A stretch of DNA of 64,000 bases from Mobula hypostoma (taxonomy: Eukaryota). Below the pieces are notes generated by a model. The model was not told the origin of the DNA, made no database searches, and saw only the letters and a program-made list of their open reading frames with translations. The translations under genes and the position numbers were made by a program. Below, piece by piece: positions 17,778 to 53,780 of the stretch (position 1 is its first letter; every line of letters begins with the position of its first letter). Location: contig NC_086125.1 in the NCBI RefSeq assembly GCF_963921235.1, positions 10,540,001 through 10,604,000 of the forward strand, read 5' to 3'.

Positions 17778-19381
17778 CAAACCCCATCTCCAGAAAAGTT
17801 GGGATATTTACCAAAATGCAATAAAAACAAAAATCTGTGATATGTTAATTCACGTGAACCTTTATTTAACTGACAAAAGTACAAAGAAAAGATTTTCAAC
17901 AGTTTTACTGACCAATTTAATTGTATTTTGTAAACATACACAAATTTAGAATTTGATGGCTGCAACACACTCAACAGAAGTTGGGACAGAGGCATGTTTA
18001 CGATTGTGTTACATCACCTTTTCTTTTAATAACACTTTTTAATCATCTTGGAACTGAGGATACTAATTGCAGTAGATTTGCAATTGGAAATTTTGTCCAT
18101 TCTTGTTTGATATAAGACTTCAGCTGCTCGACAGTCCGTGGTCTCCGTTGTGTGATTCTCCTCTTCATGATGCGCCATACATTTTCAATAGGAGATAGAT
18201 CTGGACTGGCAGCAGTCCAGTCAAACACATGCACTCTGTGTCTACAAAGCCACGCTGTTGTAGCCCGTGCAGAATGTGGTCTGGCATTGTCCTGCTGAAA
18301 TAAGCATGGACGTCCCGGGAAGAGACGTCGCCTTGATGGCAACATATGTCTCTCTAAAATCCTAATATACGCCTCAGAGTCAATGGTACCTTCAGATACA
18401 TGCAACTCACCCATGCCATGGGCACTGATGTACCCCCATACCATCACAGATGCTGGCTTTTGCACCTTTCGCTGATAACAATCTGGATGGTCGTTTTCAT
18501 CTTTGGCACGGGGAACTCAATGCCCGTTTTTTCCGAAAACTAACTGAAATGTGGACTCATCTGACCACTGCACATGGTTCCACAGTCTTTTGGTCCATCT
18601 GAGATGAGCTCGGGCCCAGAGAACTCGCCGGCGTTTCTTCATAGAGTTGATGTATGGCTTCCTCCTTGCGTAATACAGTTTCAAGTTGCATTTCTGGATG
18701 CAGCGACGGACTGTGTTGAGTGACAATGGTTTTCTGAAATACTCCCGAGCCCAGGTGGTTATAATTGTCACAGTAGCATGACGGTTTCTTAGGCAGTGCA
18801 GCCTGAGGGCTCGAAGATCACGCGCATTCAACAGTGGTTTCTGACCTTGCCCGTTACGCACTGAGATGTCTCTGAATTCTCTGAATCTTTTCACAATATT
18901 ATGTACTGTAGATGTTGAAAGACCTAAATTCTCTGCAATCTTGCATTGAGAAATATTCCTTTTGAACTGACTAACAATTCTCGCACGAATTTTGGCACAA
19001 AGGGGTGAGCCACGGCCCATCCTTGCTTGCAAGGACTGAGCCTTTGATGGACACTACTTTTATACCCAGTCATGATACCTCACCTGCTACCAATTAACCT
19101 GCTTAATGTGGAGTCTTCCAAACCGGTGTTACTTGAATATTCTGTACACTTTTCAATCTTATTTTAACTCTGTCCCAACTTTTGTTGAGTGTGTTGCAGC
19201 CATCAAATTCTAAATTTGTGTATGTTTACAAAATACAGTTAAGTTGGTCAGTAAGACTATTGAAAATCTTTTCTTTGTACTTTTGTCAGTTAAATAAAGG
19301 TTCACCTGAATTAACATGTCGCAGATTTTTGTTTTTATTGCATTTTGGAAAATATCCCAACTTTTCTGGAAATGGGGTTTG
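17778..19381 (-). mobile_element. Tc1/mariner DNA transposon (DD34E) with long terminal inverted repeats
   Basis: TIRs of about 214 bp at 17778-17991 and 19168-19381, TA on both flanks, transposase inside. Confidence 0.97.
17998..19020 (-). pseudogene. Tc1 transposase, 340 codons, two in-frame TGA stops, no frameshift
   Basis: MGRGSPLC..., WSDES, FQQDNARPH, SPDLSPIE with 34 residues between D and E; stops at 18519-18517 and 18045-18043; terminal TAA at 18000-17998. Confidence 0.93.
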
Positions 19382-20279: not shown

Positions 20280-20808
20280 TCTGGACCCCAATTTTGGGCC
20301 CCGTATCTAAGAAAGGATGTGCTGGCATTGGAAAGTATCCAAAGGAAGTTTATAAGAATTATCCCAGGAATGAAAGGGTATGAGGAACATGTGATGGCTC
20401 TAGGCCTGAACTAACTGGAGTTTATAAGAATGAGGGGGAATCTCATTAAAACCTACAAAACATTGAAAGGCCTAGAAAAAGTGGACGTGGAGAGGATGTT
20501 TCCTACAGTGGGAGAGGCTAGAACCAGAGGGTACAGCTTCAGAATAGAAAGATGTCCCTTTACGACAGAGATGAGATATTTGCTTGGCCACTGGGTGATG
20601 AATTTGAGGAAGTCATTGCCTCAAGCAGCTGGGGAGGTCGAGTCATTTGGTGTGTTTAAAGTAGAAGTTGACAGGTTCTTGGTTAGTAAGGGCATCAAAG
20701 GTTATGGGGGGAAAGCAGGGGAATGGAGTTGAGGGAGAGGGAAAATAAATCAGCCAATGGCAGAGCAGACTTGATGGGACAATTAGCCTAATTTTGCTTC
20801 TATGTACT
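20280..20808 (+). mobile_element. CR1 LINE 3' fragment
   Basis: MRGNLIKTYK.LKGLEKVDVERMFP...GIKGYG. Confidence 0.85.
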
Positions 20809-21696
20809 ATAGAATTCAGCTCTTTGGTCCCGATTTGGACCAAGGCTCCAATGAAGTTTAGAGCCTCATACTCCCAGCGAAACGCACAATAAGGTTTGGT
20901 GTGCAGGTTATCGGTGAGTAAATACTTTTACACAGCATCCTCAACAGCACTTTACTGATGAGTGACTTGGCTGGTAATTAGACTGGATTTGACCTGGACT
21001 TACTGGGGCGACTTTCCACATTGCCAGGTCGGTGTCAGTACTGCTTTATGCTGGACTAGTCTGGCTAGTGGCACATTATCATTCGAGATGACTTCTACCA
21101 CATACTTACTGATGGTTTCTGTTGCTACCTTTCATCCTGTTGGGGATGTCCCTGCATCTAAGGAAGTTGAAAATGTCCCTGAACTTAAGGAAGTTGGCAA
21201 TATCATGACTTATGAATCCAATATATATGCAGCCATGTCTTTTGGAATCATTTGAAGTCTTAGCCAAACCCGCCCATAACCTTCCTTCCACCAAACCCAA
21301 TGGTCACCATCAGGGAATGCTTCCTTTGTGCATCTGTGGTTTGGTCAAATTCAATGAATTTCAAGATGCATTTTATTCTATTCATATTAGTTTAATCCAA
21401 ACATACACCACATTGTGCTTCTTTTCAATCATCAGAGTATTTCAACATTTAATGAAAATTCACATTCTGCACAGGGCAGGCAGCTTATCAGTCACTGAAC
21501 TCCCAAAAGGATTAGTTAATTGCTGAGGAGCACCTTGGATTGATCCTTGTCTTAATGTTTCTGGGAGCTCTGTTCCATTCATCCTCACGTCTGCTTGATG
21601 CTGCTACTGGCAACGGCACTAACAGCTAAGCAGAGTGGTGAGAACACAATGCTATCATCCACAAGCCATGCCTGGGCTACTCGCCCACCTGTGACA

Positions 21697-22275
21697 ACAC
21701 AGGCGAGATGCTGGAGGAACTCGGTGGGCCGGGTGGGGGTGCACAGTCCATAGAAATTAGAGAATTTGATGTTGATGCCAACAAGTTGGGATACGAGGTG
21801 TTGTTCCATGGCATCAACACGGCAGTAAAGGAGGCCATGGACAGGCCTGTTAGTGTGGAAATAGGAAGTGATAACCACTTCCCAATGTCCCCCATGTTGT
21901 TTCCCATTATTCCTGTGGCCCCCTTACCATTGTTCTTTCCGCTTCCTCACCTTCACTTTCCTCCCTCTGGTTCCTCACCTCCTTTGTGTTATTCCATGGT
22001 CTCCTGTCCTCTCCAACCAGATTTTTTCTTTTCCGGTCCTTTGCCTCTATTGTATGTCATACCCTAGCTTCTCACATTATTTTCTCCCTCCCCCAGTCAC
22101 CACCCTTTCACCTGCCAGATTGTGCACCTTTCCCCCCAACCCTTCCCCTTTTATTGTGGCTTCTGCCCTCTTCCTTTCCAGTCTTGATGAAGGGCCTCGG
22201 CCCAAAACATTGACTGTTCTCTCCCTCCGTAGATGCTGCTCGACCTGCTGAGTTCCACCAGATTTCCAGCATCTG
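21697..22275. mobile_element. Penelope-like remnant with inverted arms
   Basis: ATGCTGGAGGAACTC at left; HGLLYCR...EQHL-like text on the minus strand; degenerate hammerhead 22179-22216 and tail at right. Confidence 0.65.
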
Positions 22276-23627
22276 AAGATGCATCTGAAGATTCATCCAG
22301 CTGCAAGAGCTCTGCCTTTTTGTAGCTCCAAGGTTCCTTTCCTTCTGGCAAATACTTCTCTATTACAAAGACAGCATGACAGATAATTCTGAAGTGGCTC
22401 CTTCTGATGCAGCTGTGTATTTATATTACACTACATCCCTGCATCCCTAAAGTGCAGGAAGAGGCAAAATCCCTGCAAGTTATTACCCGAGATCTTCTTC
22501 CAGGGCTGGTGCACAGAAGGTCCAGGATTCTCACCTCCTATCAGCAGCGCGTCCTTATCTAGACCAGCCATTTGGACCACCCGTGCCAAGAGAGGGAAGC
22601 CTGTGATATTCCGTTGGAAAGCTATGATACTGATATCTGGCAATTTCCACTGCATGTTCAAACTATCCCCACTCTTGTCCTTGTTGGTGTCCACCAAATG
22701 TTAAGAAGGTGAACAGACAACCTACATCTGATGTACAGTTTGAAGCTACCCTTTCCAAATTTCTAGATATCATTCAGACAGTCCATGCACAAAGTCTCTC
22801 CCCAGTGTTTATTTAATTTCTAGTCATCCCCATCTATTGTTCTACTGACCCCAAAATAATAATCCTATCTAAGCTCCAGACAGTTTACATCCAAAGTCCA
22901 CACAGTCTTCATTAAGTTCATCCAGATATACCATCCCCACCCAATGTCAACAGATAATCTTGTCTTTAATGTCAATCTGATTCCCAGCCAATATCCCCAC
23001 CCGATGTCTAGAGAATCTCCCCCCTCGATGTCCAACGTATGTGACTGTACCAGAGAGCCAGCCAGTCCTCACCGAATGTCCAGCCAGTAGCCACCAATGT
23101 CCAGATGATCTCGCACATTCCCCATCCATTATCCAGATGATGTCTACCCCAGCTCCCCCTTGATCTTGTGAGGGTATCTTTGCTTATTCCTATAGTCAGA
23201 TGATGAGTGAAATGACATTGTGGAATTCCAGCGATAATGAAGGTCAGAGCCCATCTGTTGGAAGGCCCTGGCCTGGGAAAGTATGGAAAAGTCACCCCTA
23301 ATCCACTTAGTAAACCAGCAGCAGAGAGACACTCCCCCCACCCACCCCAGACCAGTCACAAACAGCCTCGATAACAAACCATGGCTCCAAGCAGAAGTGG
23401 GGGCAGCTGTAACAGCAGCAACACTTACAGGGGATCTCGTACCTGTTCCTAAGGATGGTGTTTGCCAACAGAGAGGATTGGTGCTCCACTCAAAAGGATT
23501 GAGAAGAACAGAAACAAAAGGTGATACCACAGGGAAATGTTCCTACAAATCTGACAATCACTAGACTCTACATGAGTGAGACTGCAGTTCATGCAAAGCT
23601 GTACACGCACTGGGCTCCGTCTGGAAT

Positions 23628-23730
23628 TCAGACTTCACTCATCACCGACCGAGTGGCAATCAACACATCCGGCGTCGAGGGGAAGAAGCAGGATCGTTCA
23701 TGTTCCTTCTGAGAATTCAGCTGAACAATT
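23628..23730 (-). CDS. PLPPR2: PLPPR2 terminal exon: frame A NCSAEFSEGT* (stop 23700-23698) or frame B IVQLNSQ...RSVMSEV* (stop 23630-23628)
   Basis: Strong acceptor ctctttcccttccag| at 23730. Frame A resembles the PLPPR1-type 10-residue tail (recalled NHSASMTEVT). A candidate polyA signal AATAAA lies on the minus strand at 22813-22808. Confidence 0.7.
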
Positions 23731-26700
23731 CTGGAAGGGAAAGAGTTCACTCTGAAACTGCACTCACATCCGTACAGATCTCACAATAAATGGAACGACT
23801 GGAGGTCTCCTACTTTGGTACACGTAGAAGAGCGGAGTACTAGTGAATATGTAGGAGAATGGCTGGTATAGATCTGCAAAGGGACCGTGACGTACTTGTT
23901 AACAAGTCACCAATAGGTGGTGCAGTCACCAATTAGAAGGGCAAATGTAATGTTAACCTTAATTATGAGAGGGTTTGATAATACTTCTAAAATAGTCTTA
24001 TTGCAATTCTATCTATACTCGCTGTGTTGTGTACAGGTACTACATCTTCCACCCATGAAGAGATGTACTTGCCATTGAAAGAATGCAGACAGATTTACTG
24101 GATGAGTTCCAGGGGTGCTGGGTTTGTTCGATGAGGAGAGATTTCCTGCCAGTGTTAGGCCTTAGAAGAATGAGGGATCTCATCCAAACATACAATCCTT
24201 TGAAGGTTTGTCAAGTCAGGCGCCAAGAGAATGCCTTCTGCAATTTGGGAAGTCTAGCACAAGAGGGACAATTTGTGAATAAGGGGCAGATCACTAAGAC
24301 TGAGGTGAAAAGTTTCTTCATTTGGGGGTTAATGGACCCTTGGTATTCTCAGATTCCAGAGCTGGGGAGGCTTAGTCATTGTGTTAATTCAGAGCAGACA
24401 GCGACTTTGAGGAGTATGGGAATAGTAGAGGAAAATGGTACCGAGGAAGATTGGCCACGATCTTGACGAACAAGTGCAGCAGGCTCGAGGGGCCAGAAGG
24501 CCAGCTCCTGCTCCTGTTCCAAGACAACAAAAATTACCCAGTGTTGCTCAGGTCCAGCAACATCATCCAGGACTAGGTACCTAATTACTCACAGGTCGTG
24601 GTAATTGTTTATTAAAGTTCTGAGTTACTCCAGGGAACAGCAGTCATTCTCACCTCAGAGACTTTGACACTGCCTGACAAGGGTGGACATAAACTGAAGG
24701 ACGATCTGTAGGAAGGATTAGATAGGAGCTGAGGGTCAAGAGGTTAGGCCAGGCCTTGCATTAGATAATGGGCTCTATCTTGATGTCTAAATTGTTGTCC
24801 CTGATCTCACAACTTAACTAACAGTGCAGAGAAGTCAGTGAGAACAACATACTCTACAAGAACAAAATATAAAAAAAAAATACTCTGTTGGAAGTTGGGA
24901 ATGGGTGGCACAATTGGAGATAAATCCTATTTAGTTCCAATTTACAGTCCCGATCCTGAAGAGATCTAGGATCAGTTAAGTGGATTGTCCACATGTTCTT
25001 CTTCCACATCAGAGCTGAATTAAGGTGGACCATCCTTGGCCAGCAACCTGCCAAGTTCCATTGTGGTGTCGACCTCTTACCTGAACAACACTTAACTTTT
25101 CTAGTGGACTTTCCACACAGGGGAGGGCGAGCATCACACGGACTGGTTTCGAGACGTTCCCCACCTTCTTACAGACAGGGTCTGACCCTCTAAACCTGTG
25201 CACGACGCAGCAGACCTGTCGGAAGTCATTGAAGAGTCTTAGAGCTCATTCTTCGATTTCTGCGAACTATCAGAGCAGCCTATCGGGGGCATTCTGGAGT
25301 CACAAGGCGCCAAAGCGACTAACAATCTGCTGGAGGAACTCAGCAGGTCGAGCCACCCCTGAGGAAGGCAGGGAATTGTTGACATTTCGGGTTGAAACTC
25401 TGCACCCTGCTAAAGGGCTTTGAGTCCAAACGCTGACAATTCTCCCCTCCTTGCGCCCCCCCCCCCACACACACACACACACACACACACACAGCAGATT
25501 GTTTGCTGAAAGTCACAATCTGCCGGAAACAGCACGGAGTAGGCCCTTTGAGCCACCCTACAACCCTGGTTAACCCCAACCTAATCACAGGACAAATTCC
25601 GATGACCAGTTAGCCTTCCCGGTACGTCTTTGGACTGTGGAAGGAAACTGGAGCTCCCCGGGGAAACCTATGCATTCACAGGGAGGACGTACAGAATCCT
25701 TACCGATGATGCTGGAATTGAACTCTGAACTCCGACGCCCCGAGCTGCCATAGCGTTGCACTAACCCCTCAGCTGCCGTGGTGCCCAACTGAGTACCAAC
25801 TCTGTATATTTAGACTGAATGCGCATCGCTCCCCTTGGTAAATGGGAAGTGGCCACAACTGGCATTGCAACACCAAAGCCGGAACTGAATGAGAGATTGA
25901 GCTTGGAGATAACAGTTGGATTGAATTCAGGCTGAAATTTGAGTAATTTGCCTTATGATAAATGGATCAATCTGAGGGCCTTTCCTGGCTCAAACCTGCA
26001 GTGTATGCCTGGGACAAGCGTGGCCGAGACTAACCCCCCACCTCCCCGGCTGATTCCCAGACCAGTGGCTGGTCTCATTCTCTGCCCCGGCACCCAATCG
26101 CTTGGACGACCTGCGAGATTCCCGGCACTCACCAGAAACACCGCAACGGCAGCTCCGGTCACGAATCCCACCAGCACATCGGACCAGTGGTTCCGATACT
26201 CAGACACCCGCACCACCCCGGTGAGGAAGGTCAGGCACAGGAGAGTGAGGCACACCGCGGGCTTGGTCAGCCGCGTCCCCTTCGCCTGGAACATGATTGT
26301 GACGTACATCTGTGAACAGGAAGAAGCCGCACTCACACAGCGGTCTCTGTGGGACTAACCAGACATGAAAGGCTTTCAAGTTCTTAACATCAGTTCCAAC
26401 ATATTGTATCTTACACCAACTGATCTCCATTGCCATGGTCAGGTGGTTGAACTTCCTCCACCTTGCTGACTTACACAGTTGCAAGGAGTAGCGGGTGGAG
26501 ACTGATAAGAGAAATACCATACAATGTGGAAGCAGGACACTTTGGTCCATCGGTTTTATGCTAACTCACAGAACAATAGCGCTCCCCAATAACCTTCCCT
26601 GGAAACGCTCTCCTCACATTCCCTCAAGGTCCAAGTTTCCACCCGTGCAAGTCCTTTGCAAAGAGAGTAGTGGCTGTGTGGAGTGTGCCACTGAGCTGGT

Positions 26701-29700: not shown

Positions 29701-32700
29701 CCTTGGGGTCAATATCACAAATGACCTGACTTGGTCCAACCAAGGAGAGTTCACTGCCAAGAAGGCCCACCAGCGCCTTTACTTCCTGAGAAAACTAAAG
29801 AAGTTTGGCCTATCCCCTAAAACCCTCATTAACTTTTATAGATGCACCTAGAAAGCATTCTTCGAGGGTGCATCACAATCTGGTATAAAAGTTGTCCTGT
29901 CCAAGACCGGAAGAAGCTGCAGAAGATCGTGAACACGGCGCAGCACATCACACAAACCAATCTTCCGTCTTTGGACTCACTTTACACCACACGCTGTCGG
30001 AGCAGTGCTGCCCGGATAATCAAGGACACGACCCACCCAGCCAACACACTTTTCGTCCCTCTTCCCTCCGGGAGAAGGCTCAGGAGCTTGAAGACTCGTA
30101 CGGCCAGATTTGGGAACAGCTTCTTTCCAACTGTGATAAGACTGCTGAATGGATCCTGACCCGGATCTGGGCCGTACCCTCCAAATATCCGGACCTGCCT
30201 CTTGTTTTTTTTTGCACTACCTTACTTCCTATTTTTCTATTTTCTATTTATGATTTATAATTTAAATTTTTAATATTTACTAATTTAAACTATTTTTAAT
30301 ATCTTTAATATTTAATATTTGTAATCCTGGGAGTGTGAAGCGCAGAATCAAATATCGCTGTGATGATTGTACGTTCTAGTACCAATTGTTTGGCGACAAT
30401 GAAGTATAAAGTATAAAGTATAAGTGACTACCTTCCCCACCGTCCTGTTACTGCCCATTTATACCAAGCCTGTAGGTAGCTGAGCTAGGTTCATACTGGA
30501 CTGATGATGACACATTTTATACCTGTCCCATCTCTTGTCCCAAATAAACATCATGAGACAGAAGCACGATTAGGCAATTTAGTCCATCGAGTCTGCACCA
30601 CCATTCAATCATAGTTGCTTTTTTTCCCCTCTCAACACCGTTCTCCTGCCTTCTCCCTGGAACCTTTACTAATCAATAACTTATTAATCTCTGTTTTAAA
30701 TATATCCAATGACTTGGTCTACACAGCCATCTGTGGCAATGAATTCCCCAGATTCACTACCCTCTGGCTAAAGAAATTCCTCCTCATCTCTGTTCTAAAG
30801 GGACGTCCTTTGCCCTGTGGTCCTAGACTCCCCCACTCTAGGAAACATCCTCTGTATGCCCACTCTATCCCAATGTTCAATAGGTTTTAATGAGATCCCC
30901 TCCCCAACCCGCAATTCTTCTAACCTCCAGCGAGAACAGGCCCAGACCCATCAGGGCTATTCGATATCTGGAGTGGTCCACACATGTGTAGACAGTGGCC
31001 ATCCAAAAGAACATCTTCTGAAGGGCAGTCAGGGATGAGTGATAAATGCTGGATTTGTCATCTGCTTACCCATTCAGTGAATACACTATGGCTCTCTCAC
31101 TCTCACACACATATACATGACTGCCTAAACTTACACTCATCCAAACACATCCTGCGGCAACGAAGGTCCTCTGTCTGTCTGACCATACCATTGCATGCAG
31201 ATAAAGAAGGATTCCTCCTTGCTGATTCTGTAACAGTTTGTTTTTTGACCAATCAGGTTGTTAGCCCTGAGCTGAACCCCTGAAGCTGGACCACTCTTCG
31301 TCTGACCTCTACCCTTTGACCTGTCTGGTATGGGTGGCCCCACCAAGAGCCAAAACACAAGGTTCTGACTTTAGCTAACATCTCTCTCTGGATCATGCAA
31401 GCCTCCAAACCCTACGACAAGGTTGTGGTCCTCGTGAAGGAAAAAGACATCATATCATACTTCTATAAACTTATGACATCCGTTCAGACATCTTGAGTGG
31501 AGATCCTCACTTTGTTTCATTCCCCCCTGACATAATCTCTCATCCTGTGCTCACCCACCTGATTCTTCCTGACATCTGTTGGCGGGCAGCATGTGATTCA
31601 GTCTCCCTCAAATGTTTCAGCTGCTTTCTCCTCATTTCCTGGCCATGCCCTCAGTGTCTTGCAGGCCACCAGCCCTGTGAATAACTTGCTGCTCCTTCAC
31701 CGCTCACCTGAACCCTGTCCATCAGCCTCCCGTCCTCAGCTCTCTCCCCCGGCAGAAAGTTCTGCTCCCCGGATGTACCCGTGGCCTGCTGCCCGCAATC
31801 AGAGCCTGGTAAATGGCCACTGATTGAAGTCAGAATAATCCTCTCAGGACTGAACACGTAGGGGTCTGTGGCTGTCACTGACAGCCCTAATGTGGGCCTG
31901 CTCATGGATCCAATAAAACTTTCTGGCAGAGATGGTATTGCTATATTCCTGTGAAAAGTGCATCATAATTTTTGTTGTGTGCGTGATCATTTGGGCCACG
32001 TGCCTGACTCACCACTGTATAGACGGCAGCGTACATGCTCAGCGCTGCATCCTTGCAAGGGAAAGCTCGCCTGGCACTGGACACCAGTCTCGGGCTTCCG
32101 GTGCAGGCATCTGGGGAGATGATGAACTGGGAAGGCTGGTTGCAGCCCAGAGCCGTGTAGTTGGGTTGACAGACGGTGAGGAAATGTGGCGTGGGGCTTC
32201 CCATCACCACCTGCCCCGCGTTCACAAATATATCGGTGGCAAACAGGCCAAATGCGTAAACCCCTGGAAGAGAAGCGAAGGTTAGGAGGACCAGTAAAGA
32301 ACTCGTGTCATCTATTCATTGCCCACCCTTGACCTGTGGCTCCATTTGTTGCTCATTCCCCTTTCTAACCTCCTCAGCACACTCATGTATGGCATGACCT
32401 GTCTGGATGGTGCGCAGAAAAGCTTTTCGTGGTAACTCGGTACATGTGACAATAATAAAACAGTACCACACATCCCAAATCCCAGATTGAGGATCTCGTC
32501 CCAGACTGAACCGATAATGTTCCAGGGTAACATTCACGGATTCCATTTTATTGAGTCCTTTGGGTTGGGAACGTAAAACTTCCCCAAAGTTCTTCCTGGC
32601 AAAAGATTTTTTTTTGTAGATCTGAACGGATGTTTCCAATTAGACCGGCAATTTTATTCTGGGTGTCAAGGTGGAGGTGCGACTCCACCAAAGGAGATGT

Positions 32701-35700
32701 AAGGTGCTCCTTCCCTCCACTATCCTGCAGGTCACCCTTGGACAAGGCGTAGCACCTTCTTAGCCCCACAGCCCCCCCCCAACCCCAATCAGGGTCACGT
32801 GAAGTCATGGGAGCATTTGGCGGATGGTGCATATCACAAGTCCTGGTTACGTGACTATTAACGCAAGGCAGCCAATCTTTCAATCTCTGAAGAGTATTGA
32901 AAATGGCTGGGTGGGGTGGGGTGGGGGGGGGTGGTGATACCCGTCTTGTGAAGAGACTGCCCAGAAGGCGGCAATGGCATAGAACTTCTGTAGAAGAAAT
33001 TGCCAAGAACAGTAATGGTCATGGATAGATCCTGATTGCCCATGTCATTTGAAATGCATTTAACGAATGTGCAAATTTAATTAAAAATCAGTACCCCACC
33101 ACCAACACTGGTCTACAAACCCATGACCGAGGAATCTGTACCAGGTATACAATTAACGCTGGGTTTGGGTAGCCGGGATCCAGAGGGAGGGCTTGGGCTT
33201 TGCTCTGGGCACCGCCCTTGGGATGTCTGGGCTGCTCTCCTCGTCTCTTTGCCTTGCTCATGGCTGCCTCCCAGCCTCAGTGATACTGTGTTCTGATCCA
33301 CTCACTGCGCTTGCCCTTACCCTCAACAAGAGCACGTGTGTTGCCACCCAGTGGTTGGGGAAATTCCAGGGGTTATAAGCAGCTGTGACGTACGGGTTTG
33401 GATGTGTTTGCTACTCCGGCCAATTCTAGAGCAGAGGGCGGCCTTGGGGTAAGAACAGGAGGAAGGTGGTTCAGCCTTAATCCTGTTGTAGAAGTAGTAC
33501 AGGAGATCATTCAGCCCCTCAAGCCTTTTCTACCCATAGCTGGCCAACTATACAGCCTGTGTATACTACAGCCCCTCAAACCTTCATCCTTTAGAGAAGG
33601 TAAGAGCATTAGAAATCAGCATCCAAAATGCAAGTGTCACGCCGAGGGGTTGGGGTGTGAGGGAGGCCGTTCCTTTCCTCAGCTTTGATCTGATTTGCGC
33701 TCCTGGGGTTCTGAGATCTCACCTCGTCGAGGCACCACTGAGATGGAGGGCTGAGGCTGATACATCCCTACTCTCTCTTTGCCCTCGCTACCTCACACAC
33801 ATTGTGGCCTGACCCCACACCGAGGGCACCCCTACCGCCCCCCCCCAGCTTACTCCGATGGTATCTCTACCCACTGCGAGATGGGTGTCTCCGTCTTCAC
33901 CCACCCACTCCCCCCATCCGTGGAAGTAGATCGTGTCTACCTCCCTGAACCCAGAGTGAATGAAGGAAGCTACAATATGAGGAGGCGTCTCAGCGAATTT
34001 CCCTTCCCTTGCTATACCCACTACTTGTAACGAGTGGACTACAGTGAACCAACGGAGAGGAACGGAAACCAAACAGACCCAAGAACCTGATGACCCTGCG
34101 GACCAGAGGGTTCAGGGTGCAGCAATCCGCTGTCACGATGGTGCGCTCGCGGCGGATAAATTCTGACCGAAAGGTGAACGTGGCCAACTCGCCCAGAACT
34201 ATCTGCAAGAGAAAGGCGGAGAAATTTGCTGCTTCGTTGAAAAAAAAAACACTTCAAGACGAGTATAAAACCTTTCCGTATACAACTGGTTGTGGGTAAT
34301 GGTGGGGGCTGAACCGGTGATGGGACGAGTGGGGTGGGGGTGGGGTGGAGAGGAAGGGTGTTCTGGGACTGCTTGGCAATATGACATTCCCATTAGTCTG
34401 AACAGCTCCGGGTAAAGTCAATAAAACATCACACTCAGGGCCACCAACTACATGAGCATCAGCAGCAAAAAACTTTGTTCAGTGGAGAATACTTTAGACT
34501 TCAGTTGGCAAGATCAAGTCGTCAGTGACAGGACTGGGACGCCTTGCAACACCACAACTCTGCTCCCAGGAATAGCCCCCGCTCCATCAGTGCCAGTGGA
34601 TATGCAACCACACCCTCCCCCCCCACCCTGTGCCACCGGTGCCAGTGACTAGAATGTTAGAATTCTGAGCTTTCTGTGTGTGGGGGGGGGGGAGGGAAGA
34701 TACTGCAGAGGATCGAAAGAAGCTACAGGGAGTTGTAAAATTAGCTCCATCTTGGGTACCAAACTCCATAGTATCCAAGACATCTTCAAGGAGCAGTGCC
34801 TCAGAAAGGTGGCATCCATCATTAAGGACCCCCACCACCCAGGTCATGCCCTGTTCTCATTGCTACCATCAGGGAGGAGGTACAGAAGCCTGAAGGCACA
34901 CACCCAGTGATTCAGGAACAGCTTCCTCCCCTCTGCCATCCGATTTTTAAACGGGCATTGAACCCATGAACAATACCTCAGTTTTTAAAATTATTTCTGC
35001 TTTTGCATTATTTTTAATTTAACTATTTTATATACATTTACTGTAATTCATTTATTTATTTTTTTCTCTATATTTATAATGTATTGCATTGTACTGGTGC
35101 TGCAAAGTTAACAAATTTCACAATATATGCCGGTGATATTAAACCTGATCCTGGTAAAACGAGTATTTCCCCCAGAGTGTAGCACTGTATATGAACATCA
35201 AATGGTTCTTACTGTTGCCATGGGAATGGCTGACGCTAACGACTGGAGCAGGACTGGTGGAAGAACGCTCATCTCCTCCGGCCCTGGGTATGGCTTCATG
35301 TAGGCACTGTCATAGCAGAAGAAACCCTGCCAGTGCACGGTGAATGTGTCCGTGTACTCAAAGTAGTACGTGAGCAAGACCATCCCAACCATAATCAGTA
35401 GCTGGAACACAATGCAACGTTAGTGAGAGGGTGGCAGAGAAAGATTATGGGAGGGAGAGATTGAGGGAGAAAGAGAACGGGGGTATAAGAGGGAGAGACA
35501 AAGGAATGGGCAAGGGGGTAGAGGAACAGAGGGAAAGGGAAAGAAAGAGTGAGAGATGGAGTGAAAATGGGATGGGAGAGGGCAGGGAAGAGAGTGAGGC
35601 AGAGGGAGAGAGGAAAATGGGAGAAGGGGGCAGAGTGGAGAGAGAGTTACGCAGAGGATTATGGAATGAAACTGAAAGTTTGAAACACAGCATTGGAGAA

Positions 35701-38700: not shown

Positions 38701-39600
38701 CACAGGTCTTTGGGTTCTAAAGGAATCAAAGGATAAAGCTAAGGCTTTATAAAGCTCTAGTGAGGAGTTTTGGGCCCCTCATCTCAGAAAGGATGTGTTG
38801 ACATTGGAGAGGGCTCAAAGGAGGTTCACAAAAATGATTCCGGGATTGAAGGGCTTGTCATATGAGGAGTGTTTGATGGCTCTGGGACTGTACTCACTGG
38901 AATTCAGAAGAATGACGGGGAACCTCTTTGAAACCTATCGAATGTTGACAGTCCTCGATACAGTGGATGTGGAGAGGATGTTTCTGGTGCTGGGGGGAGT
39001 CTGACCAGAGGACACACCCTCAAAATTAGAGGGATGTCCTTTTAGAACGGAGATGAGAATCTCTTCAACCAGAGAGTGGTGAACCTGTGGAATTCGTTGT
39101 CACAGGCGGTTGTGGAGGCCAACTCATTGGGTATATTTTAGGCAGAGATTGATGGATTCTTGATTGGTCAGGGAATGAAGGGATACGGGGAGAAGGCAAG
39201 AGAGAAAATGGATCAGACATGATGAAATGGCGGAGCAGACTCAATGGGCCAAATGGCCTAATTCTGCTCGTATATCTTATGGTCTTATAAGAGGATTAAG
39301 TGAACCATGTATAGATTTCCCATGACTCTTACTGAATGGTGGAGCAGGACCAGGCTGCAGAGGGTGAAATGCCAACGCTTGCTTCTACCTTGTATGTTGA
39401 GGGAAGGAACTTGGGAGGAAGTGAACGGGGGAGTGGGTTGGTTTGGGGGTGTGGTCAGGAAACTGAAAGAGAATTTGAGTCTGACAGGCTTTCACAACCA
39501 TGAGGGAAGTACGGCATTCTTTTCTCAAACGCACCTCGATTGTTAGGAAGCATGGGATGATGGAATCGCTCCTATGGATGTCTTTCTCCTCACGAGCCAT
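23698..39600 (-). CDS. PLPPR2: Phospholipid phosphatase-related protein type 2 (PLPPR2/LPPR2/PRG4), spliced gene, 7 coding exons, about 324 aa
   Basis: Exons 39535-39600, 35213-35401, 34079-34202, 32013-32263, 26133-26309, 25081-25215 and 23698-23730 all have GT/AG boundaries and compatible phases (0,0,1,0,0,0). The protein contains SIIPCF, TDTF..QGFFCYDS..KPYPGPE, NAGQVV.G.PTPHFL.VC.PNYTALGC, ARRAFPCKDAAL, RVSEYRNHWSDV and ESPLEKLSV. AFPCKDAAL and PTPHFL match PLPPR2 rather than PLPPR1/3/4/5 (recalled sequences). Confidence 0.92.
25081..25215 (-). CDS. PLPPR2: PLPPR2 coding exon 6 (VCCVVHRF...ESPLEKLSVVQ)
   Basis: cgacag| acceptor, CAG|GTAAGA donor, 135 nt; internal alternative donor AA|GTTAAG after 25097. 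Confidence 0.9.
26133..26309 (-). CDS. PLPPR2: PLPPR2 coding exon 5 (MYVTIMF...AVAVFL)
   Basis: ttcacag| acceptor, |GTGAGT donor, 177 nt, C3 motif RVSEYRNHWSD. Confidence 0.95.
27020..27830 (+). mobile_element. Nested CR1 3' fragments: a younger copy (27192-27513) inside an older one
   Basis: TAAATG duplicated at 27186-27191 and 27514-27519; inner copy ends in a TCTTGTGG repeat. Confidence 0.8.
28570..28748. repeat. Fold-back of Penelope tail
   Basis: Inverted arms GCTGGAGGAACTCAGCAGG / CCTGCTGAGTTCCCCCAGC with apex GGGCCC at 28675-28680. Confidence 0.75.
28950..29460 (-). mobile_element. CR1 LINE 3' fragment
   Basis: Reverse complement of the CR1 C-terminal region and tail. Confidence 0.7.
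29505..30424 (+). mobile_element. Rex1/Babar LINE 3' fragment
   Basis: WCEDNNLSLNVSKTKELVVDFRR, FKFLGVNI, QRLYFLRKLKKF, LPSGRRLRS; (AAGTATA)n tail. Confidence 0.88.
32013..32263 (-). CDS. PLPPR2: PLPPR2 coding exon 4 (VYAFGLFATDIFVNAGQ...MYAAVYTV)
   Basis: cttccag| acceptor, |GTGAGT donor, 251 nt, carries the degenerate C1 and C2 phosphatase motifs. Confidence 0.95.
32670..33050 (-). mobile_element. Unclassified interspersed repeat (copies at 1-100 and 338-550 plus, 46775-47135 minus)
   Basis: Shared AAGGTGCTCCTTCCCTCC.CTAGCCTGCAGGTCACCCTTGG..AAGGTGTAGCACC-like text. Confidence 0.65.
34079..34202 (-). CDS. PLPPR2: PLPPR2 coding exon 3 (IVLGELA...NPLVRRVIRFLG)
   Basis: ttgcag| acceptor, |GTCTGT donor, 124 nt, phase-1 end matches the next exon. 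Confidence 0.93.
34690..35152 (+). mobile_element. Rex1/Babar LINE 3' fragment
   Basis: SIIKDPHHPGHALFSLLPSGRRYRSLK. Confidence 0.8.
35213..35401 (-). CDS. PLPPR2: PLPPR2 coding exon 2 (LLIMVGMVLL...AIPMAT)
   Basis: ttccag| acceptor, |GTAAGA donor, 189 nt, TDTFTVHWQGFFCYD motif. Confidence 0.95.
37470..37658. repeat. Fold-back of Penelope tail
   Basis: Same arms as 28570-28748 with apex TTTTGGACCCAAAA near 37576-37589. Confidence 0.7.
38740..39290 (+). mobile_element. CR1 LINE 3' fragment
   Basis: LERAQRRFTKMIPGLKGLSYEE. Confidence 0.85.
39535..39600 (-). CDS. PLPPR2: PLPPR2 coding exon 1 (MAREEKDIHRSDSIIPCFLTIE)
   Basis: ATG at 39600-39598; donor GAG|GTGCGT. An upstream acceptor (ctccttcag|) at 39626 implies a further 5' non-coding exon. 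Confidence 0.88.
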
Positions 39601-41520: not shown

Positions 41521-41869
41521 TCCCACATTTGCCCCTGCAGCAGTGGGATACACCCTCACTGCTGTCCATCCTGTAACGCACCTGTGACCAGGGCTATGCA
41601 TCTAGTGCAGGTCTTCCACACCATTGAATGTTATTTCTTAAAGGCCCAATAGACTTTTAATTGACTTTGCTTGAGATGTCACACAGGCCCTGTGAAGTTT
41701 AAAGGGAGCGTGAGAGCCAGGGCTCGGGTGCGTAGAAGGGAGCACAGTATATATTCCCAGGCGAGTCAGAGGCCCGACAGCAGGCACTTATCGGGAGAGG
41801 GATTATTGTTCCACCCCCCCACCCCCAGCTGTAAAGAACACTACCCTTCAAAGACATTTTCAGTACCCG

Positions 41870-43130
41870 CCCCTCAGCGGCGTTCCCTCACTGCTGCCCT
41901 TTTGACAGTACGACACTTCATCACTACTGCCCCTTCGGCAATGCGGCGCTCCCTCACTACTGGTCTCCTGGCAGCGCGGTGCTCCCTCACTACTGGTCTC
42001 CTGGCAGCTCGGCGCTCCCTCACTGCTGCCCTGTTGACAGTACGACACTCCATCACTACTGCCCCTTCGGCAACGCGGCGCTCCCTCACTACTGGTCTCC
42101 TGGCAGCGCGGTGCTCCCTCACTACTGGTCTCCTGGCAGCGCGGCGCTCCCTCACTGCTGCCCTGTTGACAGTACGACACTCCATCACTACTGCCCCTTC
42201 GGCAACGCGGCGCTCCCTCACTACTCGTCTCCTGGCAGCGCGGCGCTCCCTCACTGCTGGGCCTCCGGCAGCACGACGCTCCCTCACTGTCGCCACCTCC
42301 CCCCCGCAAACAGCGTGGCGCTCCCTCAGCGGCCGAACCGGATTCAGTCTGCAGGCCAGCAACAGGCTGTAATACCCGAGCTGGAGGTCTCCGGGAGCCG
42401 CACCCGCTCCCTCCGTATCTCGGGGTTTGCCCTCGCAGCTCGTTCCCGGGGAGGAGGAGGGTGCTGGCGGGTGAACCGTGGGTCCAACTGGTGGGCCGAG
42501 GCAACCCACCCGCGCCAACCTGCCGTTCCCGTGGTGAAGAGGAGCAATCTCCCCCAGCCCCAGCCCGAGCCCTCGCCGCTTCGGAGAGGCTGCATCCTAC
42601 CCGGGTGGGTCAGGTCACCCCGGCATGGTGGAGCTTGGGGCAACAGCTCCGTGCATCAATGGCCCAGCCCAGCTCTTTGTTTCAGAACCGGAGCCGGGGA
42701 TACAGGGACCCGGGGATGGGGAGAGCGCCCAAGCACCAGCTCACCTTCAGTAGACGCACATTCTCCCGCAGGATACCCCTCTTCCAGCCAGCCCCCAAAC
42801 CCGGTCACATATCCGACCCCGAGCGAGGGGAGCGGCGCATCGGCAGTCCGAGCACGTCCCGACCCGGACCCAGACGGAGCGTCGGCCAGCACGATCGCTC
42901 CCACCCCGCCGCCAGGTGCAACCGGCGGGCGCAAACACAACCCGAGCCCGGTGGCGGCAACCGCCCGAACTAGCGCCCCATCAAATCTCACCGGGAATGG
43001 CAGGGACAATGAAACGCGAGCGGGGCGAGGAGGTTCCCACAACATCCCCATCCCCGACCGTGGCACAGCCCACCACGTGAGTACAGTACTGTACTAGAGC
43101 GGAGATACAACAGCCACGGCCATGTTCAAC
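41870..43130 (-). promoter_or_regulatory. CpG island, probable PLPPR2 promoter and non-coding first exon
   Basis: High GC and CpG density 2.3-3.5 kb upstream of the ATG exon, which itself has a splice acceptor. Confidence 0.6.
41875..42330 (+). repeat. 33 bp minisatellite organised as a 132 bp higher-order repeat, about 3 copies
   Basis: Unit like GCGGCGCTCCCTCACTACTGGTCTCCTGGCAGC; 44 aa periodicity in the ORF track. Confidence 0.9.
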
Positions 43131-43154
43131 AGAAGCTGAATGAGAAACCCTCAT

Positions 43155-45090
43155 CGCTCCATCTTCTTTCCCTCTCCCTCCATTATCTTTCTCCNNNNNN
43201 NNNNNNNNNNNNNNNNNNNNNNNNNNNNNNNNNNNNNNNNNNNNNNNNNNNNNNNNNNNNNNNNNNNNNNNNNNNNNNNNNNNNNNNNNNNNNNNNNNNN
43301 NNNNNNNNNNNNNNNNNNNNNNNNNNNNNNNNNNNNNNNNNNNNNNNNNNNNNNNNNNNNNNNNNNNNNNNNNNNNNNNNNNNNNNNNNNNNNNNNNNNN
43401 NNNNNNNNNNNNNNNNNNNNNNNNNNNNNNNNNNNNNNNNNNNNNNNNNNNNNNNNNNNNNNNNNNNNNNNNNNNNNNNNNNNNNNNNNNNNNNNNNNNN
43501 NNNNNNNNNNNNNNNNNNNNNNNNNNNNNNNNNNNNNNNNNNNNNNNNNNNNNNNNNNNNNNNNNNNNNNNNNNNNNNNNNNNNNNNNNNNNNNNNNNNN
43601 NNNNNNNNNNNNNNNNNNNNNNNNNNNNNNNNNNNNNNNNNNNNNNNNNNNNNNNNNNNNNNNNNNNNNNNNNNNNNNNNNNNNNNNNNNNNNNNNNNNN
43701 NNNNNNNNNNNNNNNNNNNNNNNNNNNNNNNNNNNNNNNNNNNNNNNNNNNNNNNNNNNNNNNNNNNNNNNNNNNNNCCTCTCTCCATCTTCTCCCCCTC
43801 CCTCCCTCTCTCCATCTTCTCCCCCTCCCTCCCTCTCTCCATCTTCTCCCCTCCCTCCATCTTCCCTCCCTCCCTCCCTCCATCTTCTCCCCTTCCCTCC
43901 CTCCTTCTCCCCTTCCCTCCCTCCTTCTCCCCCCTCCCTCTCTCCATCTTCTCCCCCCCTCCCTCTCTCCATCTTCTCCCCCCCTCCCTCTCTCCATCTT
44001 CTCCCCTCCCTCCCTCCCTCCATCTTCTCCCTCTCCCTCCCTCCATCTTCTCCCTCTCCCTCCCTCCATCTTCTCCCCCTCCCTCCCTCTCTTTCCATCT
44101 TCTTTCTCCCTCCCTCCATCCCTCCCCTTCCCCNNNNNNNNNNNNNNNNNNNNNNNNNNNNNNNNNNNNNNNNNNNNNNNNNNNNNNNNNNNNNNNNNNN
44201 NNNNNNNNNNNNNNNNNNNNNNNNNNNNNNNNNNNNNNNNNNNNNNNNNNNNNNNNNNNNNNNNNNNNNNNNNNNNNNNNNNNNNNNNNNNNNNNNNNNN
44301 NNNNNNNNNNNNNNNNNNNNNNNNNNNNNNNNNNNNNNNNNNNNNNNNNNNNNNNNNNNNNNNNNNNNNNNNNNNNNNNNNNNNNNNNNNNNNNNNNNNN
44401 NNNNNNNNNNNNNNNNNNNNNNNNNNNNNNNNNNNNNNNNNNNNNNNNNNNNNNNNNNNNNNNNNNNNNNNNNNCCTCTCCCTCCTCCTCCCACTCCTCC
44501 CCCTCCCTCCCCCTCTTCCTCTCCCTCCCCCTCTTCCTCTCCCTCCCCCTCTTCCTCTCCCTCCCCCTCTTCCTTTCCCCTCCCACTCTCCCTTTTCCCC
44601 CTCCCTCCTTCCCCACTCCCCTCTCCACCCTTCCCCCTCCATCCTCTCCACCCTCCCGTTCCATCTCTCCCCATCCCCTCTCCCCCTCCTGCCTCCCCCT
44701 CCTGTCTCCCCATCCCCTCACCCCTCCCTCCATCCATTTTCTTTCCCCTTCACCTCTTTCCCCTTCCCTCCTCCCTCCTACCCACTTCCTTCTCTCCACC
44801 TACCCTCTCTACACACTCTCCAACCTCTCCCCCTCCCCTCTCCCCGACCACCCTCCACCCTCCACAACCCCTTCCACAACCCTCTCTCCACTCCCCTCTT
44901 TGCTCCCCTTCCCTTCTCCCTCCACCCTCCTCTCTCCTCCATCCCCCTCCCCTCACCCTCCACAGCCCCCTCCCCTCAACTCCCTCCCCTCTGCCCCAAC
45001 CCCCTGCACTCTGCCCCCTCCCCCTTCCCTCTTCCCCCTCACCCCTCCCTTCTTCCCCTCCACCTCTTTCCCCACTCCCTTCCACCATTA
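43155..45090. repeat. Polypyrimidine/polypurine low-complexity tract containing two assembly gaps
   Basis: Almost pure C/T on the plus strand; N runs at 43195-43778 and 44134-44474. Confidence 0.95.
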
Positions 45091-47794
45091 GCTTCTGAGT
45101 CCTTGCAATTTCAGGAGTGAGCTTTCAGTTTGAGTCAGCGCTGGTGACAGAGGGGAACGGAGCTGACGCTGTCATTGAACTATAATGAGAGTCTGGCGGT
45201 GCTGAAAGCCCAGAAGTGAATGATTACAAACCTGGTTGATGAAGCCTATTTATAGAATTGAAAAATAATGTTTGTGGACACTGGATATAGTGAATGCCAT
45301 GGGTCCTGACAACATCCTTGCTGGAGGAATTCAGTGGGTCAGGCAGCATCTGTCACACCCTTCATCTGGGTGTCCCAATTTCCTGGGTGTCATCTGAGTT
45401 TAGATGAAGGGTCTTGACCCAAAACGTCAACTGTCCATTTCCCTCCACTGATGCTGCCTGACCTGCTGAGTTCCTCCACCGGTTTGTCACAGTTTTTGCA
45501 GTCCCTGGTGTCAACATCCTTGCTGTTGCTCACTTCAGAACTATCTACACATCCAGCCGAGCTGGTCCAGGACAGTTACAAGACTGTCTATCAGTCTATC
45601 GTCAGTCATTAGCAGAGTGCTGGCAGAGTGATGCAGCAGATAGAGCCTCTGCCTCACCGTGCCTGAGAACTCGGGTGCTGCCTGTGAGCAGTCTGTGAGA
45701 GCCATGGGTCTCCTCACACCCCCCAAGTCCTAAGGCACGTGGGTTGGTTGGTTAATTGGCCACTAATTTGCTCCTGGTGTCTGGGTGAGTGGAGGAATCT
45801 GGGGGGCGTTGGACAATCTGGGGAGAATGAAATGGGAATAGAGTGGGTGTTTGACTATTTTTTAATTTACTTAGTGACACAGCGTGGAGTAGCCCCTTCC
45901 GAGCCACCCCACAACCCAATCACGGGACAATATACAATGAGCAGTTGTCCTACCTGTCACGTCTTTGGACTGTGGGAGGAAACCAGAGCACCCGGGGAAA
46001 CCCACGCTCCCCGTGGGAAGGATGCACAGAGAATCCTTACAGAACGGCGCCGGAATTGAATTCTGAGTTCCGGGCCACCTCAAGCTGTAAATATATCACT
46101 TCCAGCGCTATGCTGCTGTGGCCCCCCACGTGGACTCAAACAGAGTCACAGAGCGCAGACGCCGGCCCTCCTGCCTAACTGCACCACGCTGGCCAAGGTT
46201 TCCGGCTAAGTTTCTACCATTTGCCCACACTCATTTTATTTAGTTTTAAGTTTTATTCAGAAATACAGCACGATAACAGGCCCTTCTGGCACAATGAGCC
46301 CGCGCCGCCCAATGACCAATTTACCCACTGATCTGTAGGCCTTTGCGATGTGGGAAGAAACGGCGAGGGTTTCAGAGGAAACCCACGCGGTCACAGGGAG
46401 AACATCCAAACACCTTGCAGGCACTGGCAGGAATCGAACCCTGATCACTCATCACTGGTGCTGTTAAAGCATTGCGCTAACCACTACACTAACGTGCTGC
46501 CTATGTGCCCTGTACCCCTCTAAACCAGAGGTTCCCAACTTTTTTTAATGCCTTCAACCCCTGCTAAGGGGTCTGCGGACTTCGGGTTGGGAACCCTGCT
46601 CTAAGTTTTTCCTACCCAATTACCTGTTTAATGTTGTTAATGTACCTGCCTCAGCCACTTCCTCTGGCTGCTCGTTCCATATACTGGGTGAAAAAGTTGT
46701 CCCTCAGATTCCTTTTAAATCTTTCTCCTCTCACCTTGAACTTGTGCCTCCTAATTATTGCTTTGGCAATCTTGGCTTGCGGGGTGGAGATACATCTCTA
46801 CCAAAGGAGATGTAAGATGCTCCTTCCCTCCTCCGCTAGCCTGCAGGTCTCCCTGGGCAAGGTGTAGCACCTGCTTAGCCCCCCGATCAGGGTCACGTGA
46901 AGCAAGTGGTGGATGGTTGTACGAGCAGCTATTGCATATCACAAGTTCTGGTTATGTGATCACTTACGCCAGGTAGACAATCTTTGATGAGTATTGATCC
47001 TGGCTGGGGCCACCCCTCTTGGAAAGACACTGCCCAGAAAGATCCAGTGACAAACCACTTCTGTAGAGAAATTTGCCAAGAACAATCATGGTCATAGACT
47101 ATGATCGCCCATGTCATACAACATGGCACATAATAATGGTGAGAAACAGACTGTGCACATTCACCCCATCTATCCCTTTCATAAATTTATAGATCTCTAT
47201 AAGATCACCCCTCGTTCTCCTGTGCTTTCTGGTAAAAGTCAGAGCCTGCTCAACCTCTCTCCATAACTGAGTCCCTCGACTCAGTGGACTGAAGGGCCGT
47301 TTCTGTACTGTGAGGCTTTATGACGCTATGATCGAAGGTGTGGCCAACTGCATTACCAAGTACACTTTAACCAACAACTTGCTCGTGATAGTTTCTTGAG
47401 AGTTTCATGTTGCAGTCTTCATCCAAACAGGAATGTGTGAAAGAGGTAGTTGAGGTGAGAAGGAAGGAGAGTGGAGTCTGTAGGGAAGGGTGGGAGAATG
47501 AGGAGAGTGAATGTCAGAGAATTGGAGAGTAGGACAGAGGGGAGTGAAATAGGGAGAGGCTGAGAAGAGAGAGCATGATGGAAAAGAGAAGAGTGATACA
47601 GAATGTGTGTACAGGAGAAGGTGAAACAGTGCCTATATTTCATTGAGTTTGAGGAGATTTGGTATGTCACCAAAGACATTCATAAATTTCTGTAGATGTA
47701 CCATGGACAGAATTCTAACTGGCTGCATCTCTGTCTGGTATGGGGTGCTGGGGGGAGGGGGCTACTGCACAGGATCAGAATAAGATGATACAAC

Positions 47795-53140: not shown

Positions 53141-53780
53141 TGACAATGTTTCCTACTGTGTGAGGTAAAGTGTCCATTCTTACCTGGGATGAAGTGCTGA
53201 TGTGATTCTGAGGTGTTCCTCACGTAGGATGTGGAGGGCCTTAATTTCTGGAGACCCTTGTTAACAGGTGCCCACCTCTGCTGGCACAGCCCAGTCAGCC
53301 ATTCAGGGCCATTGCAGGCCTTTCCCATTACTCAAATCAGGACATACTCAATCTGCCCCACTGGCTGAAGAGACACCCTCACCTGGTGTTTTGTACAGCA
53401 AAGTTTGGGTTTCTCATAGAAATCTGCAACTTTAATTTGATCAGAATCAGGGTTAATATTACTGGCTTATGTTGTGAAATTTCATGCAGAAATGCATCCA
53501 GTCAGACCAAAATTCATAGGGCCAGACACATAAATATTGTACAATGACTGCTTTGGAATACTTGTCTCACTCTGCCTTGTGAGAAACCAGCCTGAGTCTC
53601 TATATGGCATCTTTGCATGATCATAACTCATTTTTACAAAGTGGCTTGCTACTTTTCATGAAGAGGCAACCTCCGCCAAGTCTCATTGGCACAGCGGGCA
53701 AGAACGGTGGGTGAAGAACTTCACTGCAATCTGAAAAACAACCAAGCATCTTTAACCATTGCTTACTACATTTGTTTTAG

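Follow-up and report, generated by a model that had tools for sequence, protein, structure and literature searches.

Can the last exon of a single ray gene furnish one membrane protein with two different C-terminal tails, and have both tails been kept in evolution? The question arises in a window of 64,000 nucleotides (nt) of Mobula hypostoma DNA (contig NC_086125.1, positions 10,540,001 to 10,604,000 of the forward strand), the minus strand of which carries seven coding exons that we assign to PLPPR2. PLPPR2, also known as PRG4 or LPPR2, belongs to the lipid phosphate phosphatase-related family and is a six-pass membrane protein presumed to be catalytically inactive. The best explanation of the evidence, and one in which we place considerable confidence, is a conserved two-donor, two-tail splice switch at the border of exons 6 and 7. 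Two GT dinucleotides 16 nt apart would be trivial by chance; this pair is more than chance, because joints at both donors occur in RNA and because the donors, their spacing and the two reading frames are conserved in six other genomes.

Near position 25100 the minus strand reads ...CCACTAGAAAA/GTTAAGTGTTGTTCAG/GTAAGAGG, that is, GAAAA/GTTAAGTGTTGTTCAG/GTAAGA, where slashes mark the two splice boundaries. The part of exon 6 common to both isoforms (25097–25215), present in contigs of RNA runs X1, X16 and X4, ends with ...CVESPLE and the AA of a Lys codon. It is followed by the 16-nt alternative segment GTTAAGTGTTGTTCAG (25081–25096), the first 7 nt of which, GTTAAGT, form the upstream donor, and then by the consensus downstream donor GTAAGA (25075–25080), with CAG on its exon side. 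Exon 6 consequently spans 25215–25081 or 25215–25097: with the downstream (‘long’) donor the segment is exonic and encodes the G that completes the Lys codon plus LSVVQ, whereas with the upstream (‘short’) donor it is intronic. The remainder of the last intron (23731–25074), over which contig depth is zero save for one low-depth fragment, ends in a polypyrimidine tract and the acceptor ...ctctttcccttccag. Across the boundary at 23730 the sequence is ...ctctttcccttccag/AATTGTTCAGCTGAATTCTCAGAAGGAACATGA..., reading ...ttcccttccag/AATTGTTCAG.

A seven-exon model built from open frames and splice signals reproduces exactly the original prediction of two donors 16 nt apart and of products of 324 and 342 residues. 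The downstream donor (after 25081) yields the 324-residue form, ending SPLEK-LSVVQ-NCSAEFSEGT, and the upstream donor (after 25097) yields the 342-residue form, ending SPLEK-IVQLNSQKEHERSCFFPSTPDVLIATRSVMSEV, with SEV as its last residues. The 16-nt offset is not divisible by 3, and the opening 33 nt of exon 7 (23698–23730) are therefore read in two frames, both open to stops within the last exon: as NCSAEFSEGT and a TGA at 23700–23698 after the long donor, and as (K)IVQLNSQKEHE after the short one. The next stretch (23628–23697) is coding in the short-donor frame only, ending ...RSCFFPSTPDVLIATRSVMSEV and a TGA at 23630–23628, and serves the long form as 3′ untranslated region (UTR). A further 3′ UTR of ~2.2 kilobases (kb; 21415–23627) bears an ATTAAA signal at 21448–21453, and contigs end at 21415–21431, some 20–35 nt beyond it. 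The 324-residue product agrees at all 324 shared residues with the RefSeq ‘phospholipid phosphatase-related protein type 2a isoform X3’ of Mobula hypostoma, a long-donor form that, relative to our model, extends further at the N-terminus and gains 15 residues through an upstream acceptor of exon 5.

Use of the two donors was assessed in four runs from three studies (X1, X3, X4 and X16), recorded as assembled contigs rather than reads and with coded metadata, which were compared with the window over 20500–25300. Runs X1 and X3 derive from organism A (X1 having 0–1 differences from the window), X4 from organism B (~1.7% diverged) and X16 from organism G (~1.6% diverged). Of the words sampled from exon 7 plus UTR, 0.6–0.99 occur in the runs (for 22600–23735, 0.99 in X3 and 0.97 in X1); of those from a 3-kb stretch that includes introns, for which X16 is not listed, only 0.16–0.22 occur in X1, X3 and X4. 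High coverage of exon 7 and UTR with low coverage of the intron-containing stretch leads us to read these runs as RNA. A joint of 23730 with 25097, which skips 1366 nt bounded by CT..AC (GT..AG on the minus strand), occurs in a 2024-nt contig of X1 and again in a 2204-nt contig of X16, and a joint of 23730 with 25081, which skips 1350 nt and is also GT..AG on the minus strand, occurs in a 1875-nt contig of X4. The joint-bearing contigs extend into exon 5 and through the 2.2-kb 3′ UTR. Moreover, the loose ends past 25216 of the X1 and X16 contigs equal, in reverse complement, the last bases of exon 5, which confirms the exon 5–6 junction and the frame into exon 6. One X3 contig breaks off exactly at the acceptor, 23730, which suggests a branch point in the assembly graph. 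Two donors are spliced in RNA to one shared acceptor, and the predicted junctions 25081>23730 and 25097>23730 each exist, in different runs.

An acceptor internal to exon 7 had also been proposed as a route to the SEV frame. The arithmetic of that proposal holds, as the long donor joined to 23720 or 23708 would re-enter this frame, but no internal-acceptor joint occurs among the contigs of the four runs, and we regard the route as unsupported; the TTCTCAG on which they would depend is explained by codons for F-S-E. Separately, summed contig depth leaps to hundreds or thousands, with many loose ends, at 22110–22270 (inside the PLPPR2 3′ UTR) and at 20661–20821 in all four runs, and these intervals are probably interspersed repeats found in many transcripts.

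Conservation of the donors and tails

We compared the window with the genomic loci of three elasmobranchs (skate, sawfish and zebra shark), the common lizard, the bowfin and a butterflyfish, which is the teleost of the set. All seven genomes have AAA/GTTAAGT (GTTGAGT in lizard), then, after exactly 16 nt, CAG/GTAAG (CAA/GTAAGC in skate), and all have one shared acceptor and a SEV frame of 33–35 codons. The short 10-codon frame stops at the same codon in six of them and, following an in-frame insertion, one codon later in the teleost (11 codons). Across the last 18 SEV-frame codons, variable columns at codon positions 1, 2 and 3 number 6, 2 and 16, respectively, a third-position bias that shows the SEV frame to be under purifying selection over the span from elasmobranchs to tetrapods. 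The coding part of exon 7 is also more alike between genomes than its flanks; for window and zebra shark, for example, identity is 0.80 in the coding part, 0.53 over the 300 nt of UTR that follow and 0.49 in the upstream intron. For the 10-codon frame, conservation is argued from the fixed position of its stop and from a tail motif shared with the paralogue PLPPR5. By these comparisons, the donor pair appears to be gnathostome-wide, and non-mammalian jawed vertebrates have maintained the dual-tail arrangement for >400 million years.

Proteins tell a similar story. We compared the residues that follow SPLEK in ~150 proteins, and the long-donor tail, five residues (LS..Q) and then 10–11 residues ending [FY]-[ST]-E-x-T, is found throughout non-mammalian gnathostomes; examples are NCSAEFSEGT in Mobula, NRPGAFSEGT in Heptranchias, NHRAAFADVT in a caecilian, NHGVVFSEVT in the wall lizard, and APGLPYSEIT and TPRGSPFSEIT in teleosts. 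Likeness to the C-terminus of PLPPR5 (NHITAFAEVT) leads us to read the FSEGT type as the probable ancestral tail of the PLPPR family. The short-donor tail has 33–35 residues and ends FP[AST]TPDVLI..[RQ]S..SEV. It is found in sawfish, skate, stingray, bullhead shark, catshark, zebra shark, coelacanth, lungfish, newt and caecilian, and also in lizards, geckos, snakes, turtle, bichir, sturgeon, bowfin and teleost plppr2a. From sharks to lizards its end, FPSTPDVLIATRSVMSEV, has been kept; the plppr2b-like proteins of teleosts finish with ...PPDVLLPSRRCLTS[AS]V. An S-x-V end is present in 50 of the 51 proteins with the PDV motif (SEV in 41, SAV in 6, SQV in 2 and SDV in 1; the remaining protein ends otherwise). 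As to scope among holocephalans, the sole Callorhinchus protein is a fragment without the tail.

Two observations concern variants of the SEV tail. In its less conserved middle (23680–23690), the window and the stingray Hemitrygon lack one Ser codon (ERS-CFF) that sawfish and skate have (ERSSCFF), an in-frame 3-nt difference. In lizards, geckos, snakes and turtle, some isoforms (proteins P0262, P0274, P0276, P0280 and P0281) use the long donor (LS.AQ), continue for ~46 extra residues (...VRD.PEEQ.FSTLL.R.LERQLARSL...PYE) and then enter exon 7 in the SEV frame. The extra segment, which in Zootoca (locus L004) lies between 26769 and 36778, appears to be a cassette exon in the 10-kb last intron and would constitute a third route to the SEV tail.

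Mammals differ. Orang-utan and raccoon-dog PLPPR2 proteins end SPLEK-NPR[SP]AGRIRHRHGSPHPSRRT.PAVAT, whereas those of deer mouse, voles, echidna and raccoon dog (isoform X1) read SPLEK-LSVAQ and continue into a long proline-rich tail (EPETC... in deer mouse and others). This pair fits the same 16-nt tandem donors, a comparison made on proteins rather than on mammalian DNA. Neither mammalian tail ends in FSE.T or S-x-V, and local alignment to the SEV tail (500 shuffles) found no significant similarity, the best p value being ~0.05, most >0.2 and the highest >0.9. We also considered whether the mammalian long-donor tail (...GHLIPSCVSS...) might be the old SEV frame after an insertion or deletion, and dropped the idea as unsupported after alignment with lizard, coelacanth, newt and lungfish tails (500 shuffles each; p of 0.05–0.23 for deer mouse and >0.6 for echidna).

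The original prediction, which invoked a switch common to all jawed vertebrates, is supported, with qualifications. Donors and frames are kept in the DNA of elasmobranchs, a holostean, a teleost and a lizard, the SEV frame being retained among chondrichthyans in skate, sawfish and zebra shark, and both frames persist at the protein level in coelacanth, lungfish, amphibians and turtles. The mammalian isoform pair that it named also exists, SPLEK-NPRSAG... being the orang-utan and raccoon-dog form and SPLEK-LSVAQ-EPETC... that of deer mouse and other mammals. Those tails, however, resemble neither SEV nor FSE.T, and the SEV toggle itself is not common to all jawed vertebrates; the ancestral tail pair appears to have been remodelled in mammals.

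Several points weigh against a conserved splice switch. The two joints never occur together in any of the four runs, and the long joint, 25081>23730, comes from an organism ~1.7% diverged, not from the window's own species. Contigs cannot yield isoform ratios, and tissues are coded. The X4 contig has one difference, its site unlisted, within 25081–25216; if inside GTTAAGT, it could disable that donor in organism B. Conservation of the short frame in the 33-nt overlap is partly imposed by the other frame, which confounds a codon-position test. Finally, mammals are without both ancestral tails, so any role of the tails there is dispensable or replaced.

These points can be assembled into rival explanations. 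The one that survives best, which we nevertheless consider improbable, holds that only the SEV isoform matters, with the long-donor product a tolerated by-product and the short frame kept by overlapping SEV coding and splice signals. It gains from the confounded conservation of the 10-residue tail, which lies entirely within the dual-coding 33 nt, from the greater drift of that tail (NCSAEFSEGT, NRSVAFSEGT, NHGVVFSEVT, TQRAAFSEIT) and from the presence of the short-donor joint in two of the three runs with an assembled joint, including the deepest contig. Against it, the stop of the short frame is at one codon in six of seven genomes, with a shift of a single codon in the teleost. Moreover, the [FY]-[ST]-E-x-T end matches the PLPPR5 C-terminus (FAEVT) and would on that account be older than the host gene of the SEV frame, and the downstream donor is a strong consensus site that most lineages keep and that is the assembled path in X4.

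Slightly less probable again is species-fixed donor use, in which each species has essentially one donor and the junctions differ between related rays with no switch within an animal. Organisms A and G do show 25097>23730 and B shows 25081>23730, with no run containing both, and the unlisted exon 6 difference in X4 would suit this explanation. The donors of the window are intact, however, and identical to those of sawfish; the Mobula hypostoma RefSeq isoform X3 takes the long donor, and run X1, identical to the window, takes the short one; run X3, from the same organism as X1, has the contig that halts at 23730 as at an assembly branch; numbered RefSeq isoforms carry one or other tail in many species; and both frames are kept in genomes with just one annotated isoform. 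The idea that the joints are assembly chimeras or a genomic processed pseudogene, which trades on the guessed RNA nature of the runs and on records that are contigs and not reads, is very improbable, as both joints fall exactly at GT..AG boundaries around an intron of zero depth, in contigs that span exon 5 through the whole 3′ UTR to ~20–35 nt beyond ATTAAA, and come from three independent studies, and as independent RefSeq models of other species share the boundaries.

Donor recognition and the SEV end

If PLPPR2 carries a two-donor switch, how might the donors be told apart? For the downstream donor, CAG/GUAAGA, a near-consensus site, a canonical duplex with U1 is predicted at -11.1 kcal/mol. 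In the normal register the upstream donor, AAA/GUUAAGU, is a poor match to the consensus. Its best predicted duplex (ViennaRNA, unmodified U1) instead places +1G on C9 and +3 to +9 on A7 to A1, with an energy of -5.9 kcal/mol in the ray and -6.6 kcal/mol in lizard, the GUUGAGU of which retains the shifted-register pairing. Atypical 5′ splice sites were reportedly found by Roca and Krainer in 2009 to be read by U1 in a +1 shifted register, and we infer that U1 may recognise the upstream donor in this way. Tan et al. 2016, which cites that work and defines the +1 shifted register, gives /GUCAAGUAU as a test site for it (PMC4856993), with a GU-N-AAGU pattern that is also that of the upstream donor, /GUUAAGU; the shifted pairing is a thermodynamic prediction, and the motif was compared only with the oligonucleotide table of that paper. 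The strictness with which both GTT[AG]AGT and the spacing are conserved agrees with a competition between an atypical and a canonical site.

On this account the spliceosome can cut exon 6 either at the atypical AAA/GUUAAGU or at the consensus CAG/GUAAGA, with one acceptor for both, and the 16-nt offset causes the opening 33 nt of exon 7 to be read in two frames. Choice of the downstream donor adds LSVVQ and the 10-residue FSEGT tail, and choice of the upstream donor adds the 33-residue tail that finishes S-x-V. Because both stops lie in the last exon, neither mRNA is an expected target of nonsense-mediated decay, and both should escape it. Donor choice may be regulated. A mouse long-read study lists Plppr2, giving no further detail, as a gene whose isoform usage in cortex depends on sex.

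What might the SEV tail do? Class I PDZ-binding C-termini have the form [S/T]-x-hydrophobic-COOH, and the SEV isoform ends ...MSEV at a free C-terminus, a match to [S/T]-x-[V/I/L]. The C-terminus of PLPPR proteins is cytosolic (PMC9520309), and SEV could be a class I PDZ ligand that alters the partners or trafficking of this cytosolic tail. Against this, PDZ binding is argued from a three-residue motif only, and the 2022 review of the family (PMC9520309) nowhere mentions PDZ, splicing (‘splice’) or isoforms of PLPPRs. A more speculative proposal, which we regard as possible rather than likely, is that the SEV isoform represents PLPPR2 in its ancestral form, targeted to membrane or synapse, its conserved 18-residue end, which finishes in a PDZ ligand, recruiting scaffolds and shifted-register donor choice setting the scaffolded amount, and that mammals lost this tail. 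The same review describes the mouse PLPPR2 tail as ‘extensively mutated’ relative to paralogues and overexpressed mammalian PLPPR2 as residing in intracellular compartments (PMC9520309); if the proposal were true, tail loss would explain both.

Gene model and surroundings

The assignment to PLPPR2, made in the original prediction, was borne out by phylogeny. A profile seeded with exons from the window brought up hundreds of PLPPR proteins, and we built a midpoint-rooted maximum-likelihood tree of 35 proteins, in which PLPPR1, PLPPR3 and PLPPR4 were not knowingly sampled. The window groups with sawfish and skate within a chondrichthyan clade (support 100/99). This clade is sister to bony-vertebrate PLPPR2, mammals included, with support of only 84/73, and the fork that parts the PLPPR2 grouping from the PLPPR5 clade has support of 95/93. 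Matches to the Pfam profile PF01569 agree: exon 5 scores 35.3 bits, above the cut-off of 27.2, exon 4, taken alone, scores 22.4 bits, below the cut-off, and the sawfish protein, 93% identical to that of the window, scores 65 bits. Judged from tree and profile, the gene is a PLPPR2 orthologue of the PAP2 superfamily, PLPPR subfamily. Teleost proteins with an S-x-V tail that NCBI names ‘type 5-like’ fall within the PLPPR2 clade and are therefore probably plppr2b.

Upstream of the switch, all on the minus strand, coding exon 1 (39535–39600; ATG at 39600, MAREEKDIHRSDSIIPCFLTIE, donor GTGCGT) is identical to the corresponding part of Mobula hypostoma PLPPR2a isoform X3. Exons 2 (35213–35401) and 3 (34079–34202, ending in phase 1) are placed by open frame and splice signals. 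Exons 4 (32013–32263; PF01569 E=1e-4 for the exon alone) and 5 (26133–26309; E=1e-8) encode the first and second halves of the PAP2 core. The 45 nt before exon 5 (26310–26354) are open in frame (SHRDRCVSAASSCSQ) and are contained in the RefSeq isoform; an upstream alternative acceptor of exon 5 may add these 15 residues to the PAP2 core. The Hemitrygon protein differs from that of the window at several positions.

Other features lie around the gene. A G-rich simple-repeat region of GGA/GAG type at 41800–45100, with runs of N (masked or gap) at 43195–43777 and 44134–44474, adjoins a GC-rich stretch upstream of exon 1, which may contain the promoter or a 5′ exon of the N-terminally extended RefSeq isoform. 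Long open frames on the minus strand at 59638–60720, 52512–53219 and 18046–19053 look like fragments of reverse transcriptase (...YIDDL... type) and like a Tc1/mariner-like transposase, and we take them to be transposon remnants flanking PLPPR2. In the skate Leucoraja (locus L001, 1–1541), a paralemmin-family gene adjoins PLPPR2a on the opposite strand. A paper on paralemmin evolution also mentions PRG4 (PMC3405040), and this mention may bear on conserved synteny.

Comparison with known systems

Both PLPPR2 isoforms are already present in RefSeq models of many species and are not new as such, and the switch is an ordinary splice event of a well-described kind. In the full-text literature, we found no paper describing the PLPPR2 tail switch, its conservation or the PDZ motif. 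In its family, which shapes the growth of neurites and lipid signalling at synapses, PLPPR2 has received the least study, and the main review treats it as a short-tailed oddity (PMC9520309). Two conserved cytosolic ends would provide a testable handle on its function, through isoform-specific partners and localisation, and the comparison points to lineage-specific loss in mammals.

Among the closest known systems is mammalian PLPPR2 (PRG4/LPPR2) itself. The gene and the exon boundary are the same, LSVAQ (five codons plus 1 nt) is in or out, and the last exon is again read in two frames (SPLEK-NPRSAG...AVAT versus SPLEK-LSVAQ-EPETC...). By contrast, the mammalian long-donor frame continues for >100 residues. 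PLPPR5 offers a second parallel, known here from proteins alone. Its isoforms read SPLEK-NHITAFAEVT and SPLEK-V[TAP]SVQ-NHITAFAEVT (proteins P0277, P0289 and P0040 versus P0275, P0295 and P0044, from mammals, birds and a caecilian), with a five-residue segment in or out at the homologous place and a 10-residue tail of the same type. In PLPPR5, however, the segment corresponds to 15 nt, or five whole codons, which keeps the frame, with neither dual coding nor a SEV-type tail. The tandem donor may thus be older than the duplication that gave PLPPR2 and PLPPR5. Further PLPPR5 isoforms take another last exon (...SFKDCLARLFSWI...HLQLRQ).

Like established PDZ ligands, the short-donor isoform has a cytosolic tail with a suitable end, S-E-V, and S-x-V recurs in 50 of the 51 orthologue tails; unlike them, its conserved block of ~18 residues (FP.TPDVLI..RS..SEV) is much longer than a PDZ ligand needs.

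More broadly, the locus resembles conserved, alternatively spliced dual-coding regions, in which a frame-shifting event leads to a short terminal-exon stretch being read in two frames, with unrelated C-termini, great age and a nervous-system gene as host. [quoted passage not shown] The main text of that preprint does not name PLPPR2, and neither does that of a second preprint, on human dual-coding regions. Where PLPPR2 differs is in the loss of its ancestral frame pair in mammals, because of which a human-anchored survey would probably date the region as young. The ray gene exemplifies a dual-coding region of ancient origin that such surveys would probably miss.

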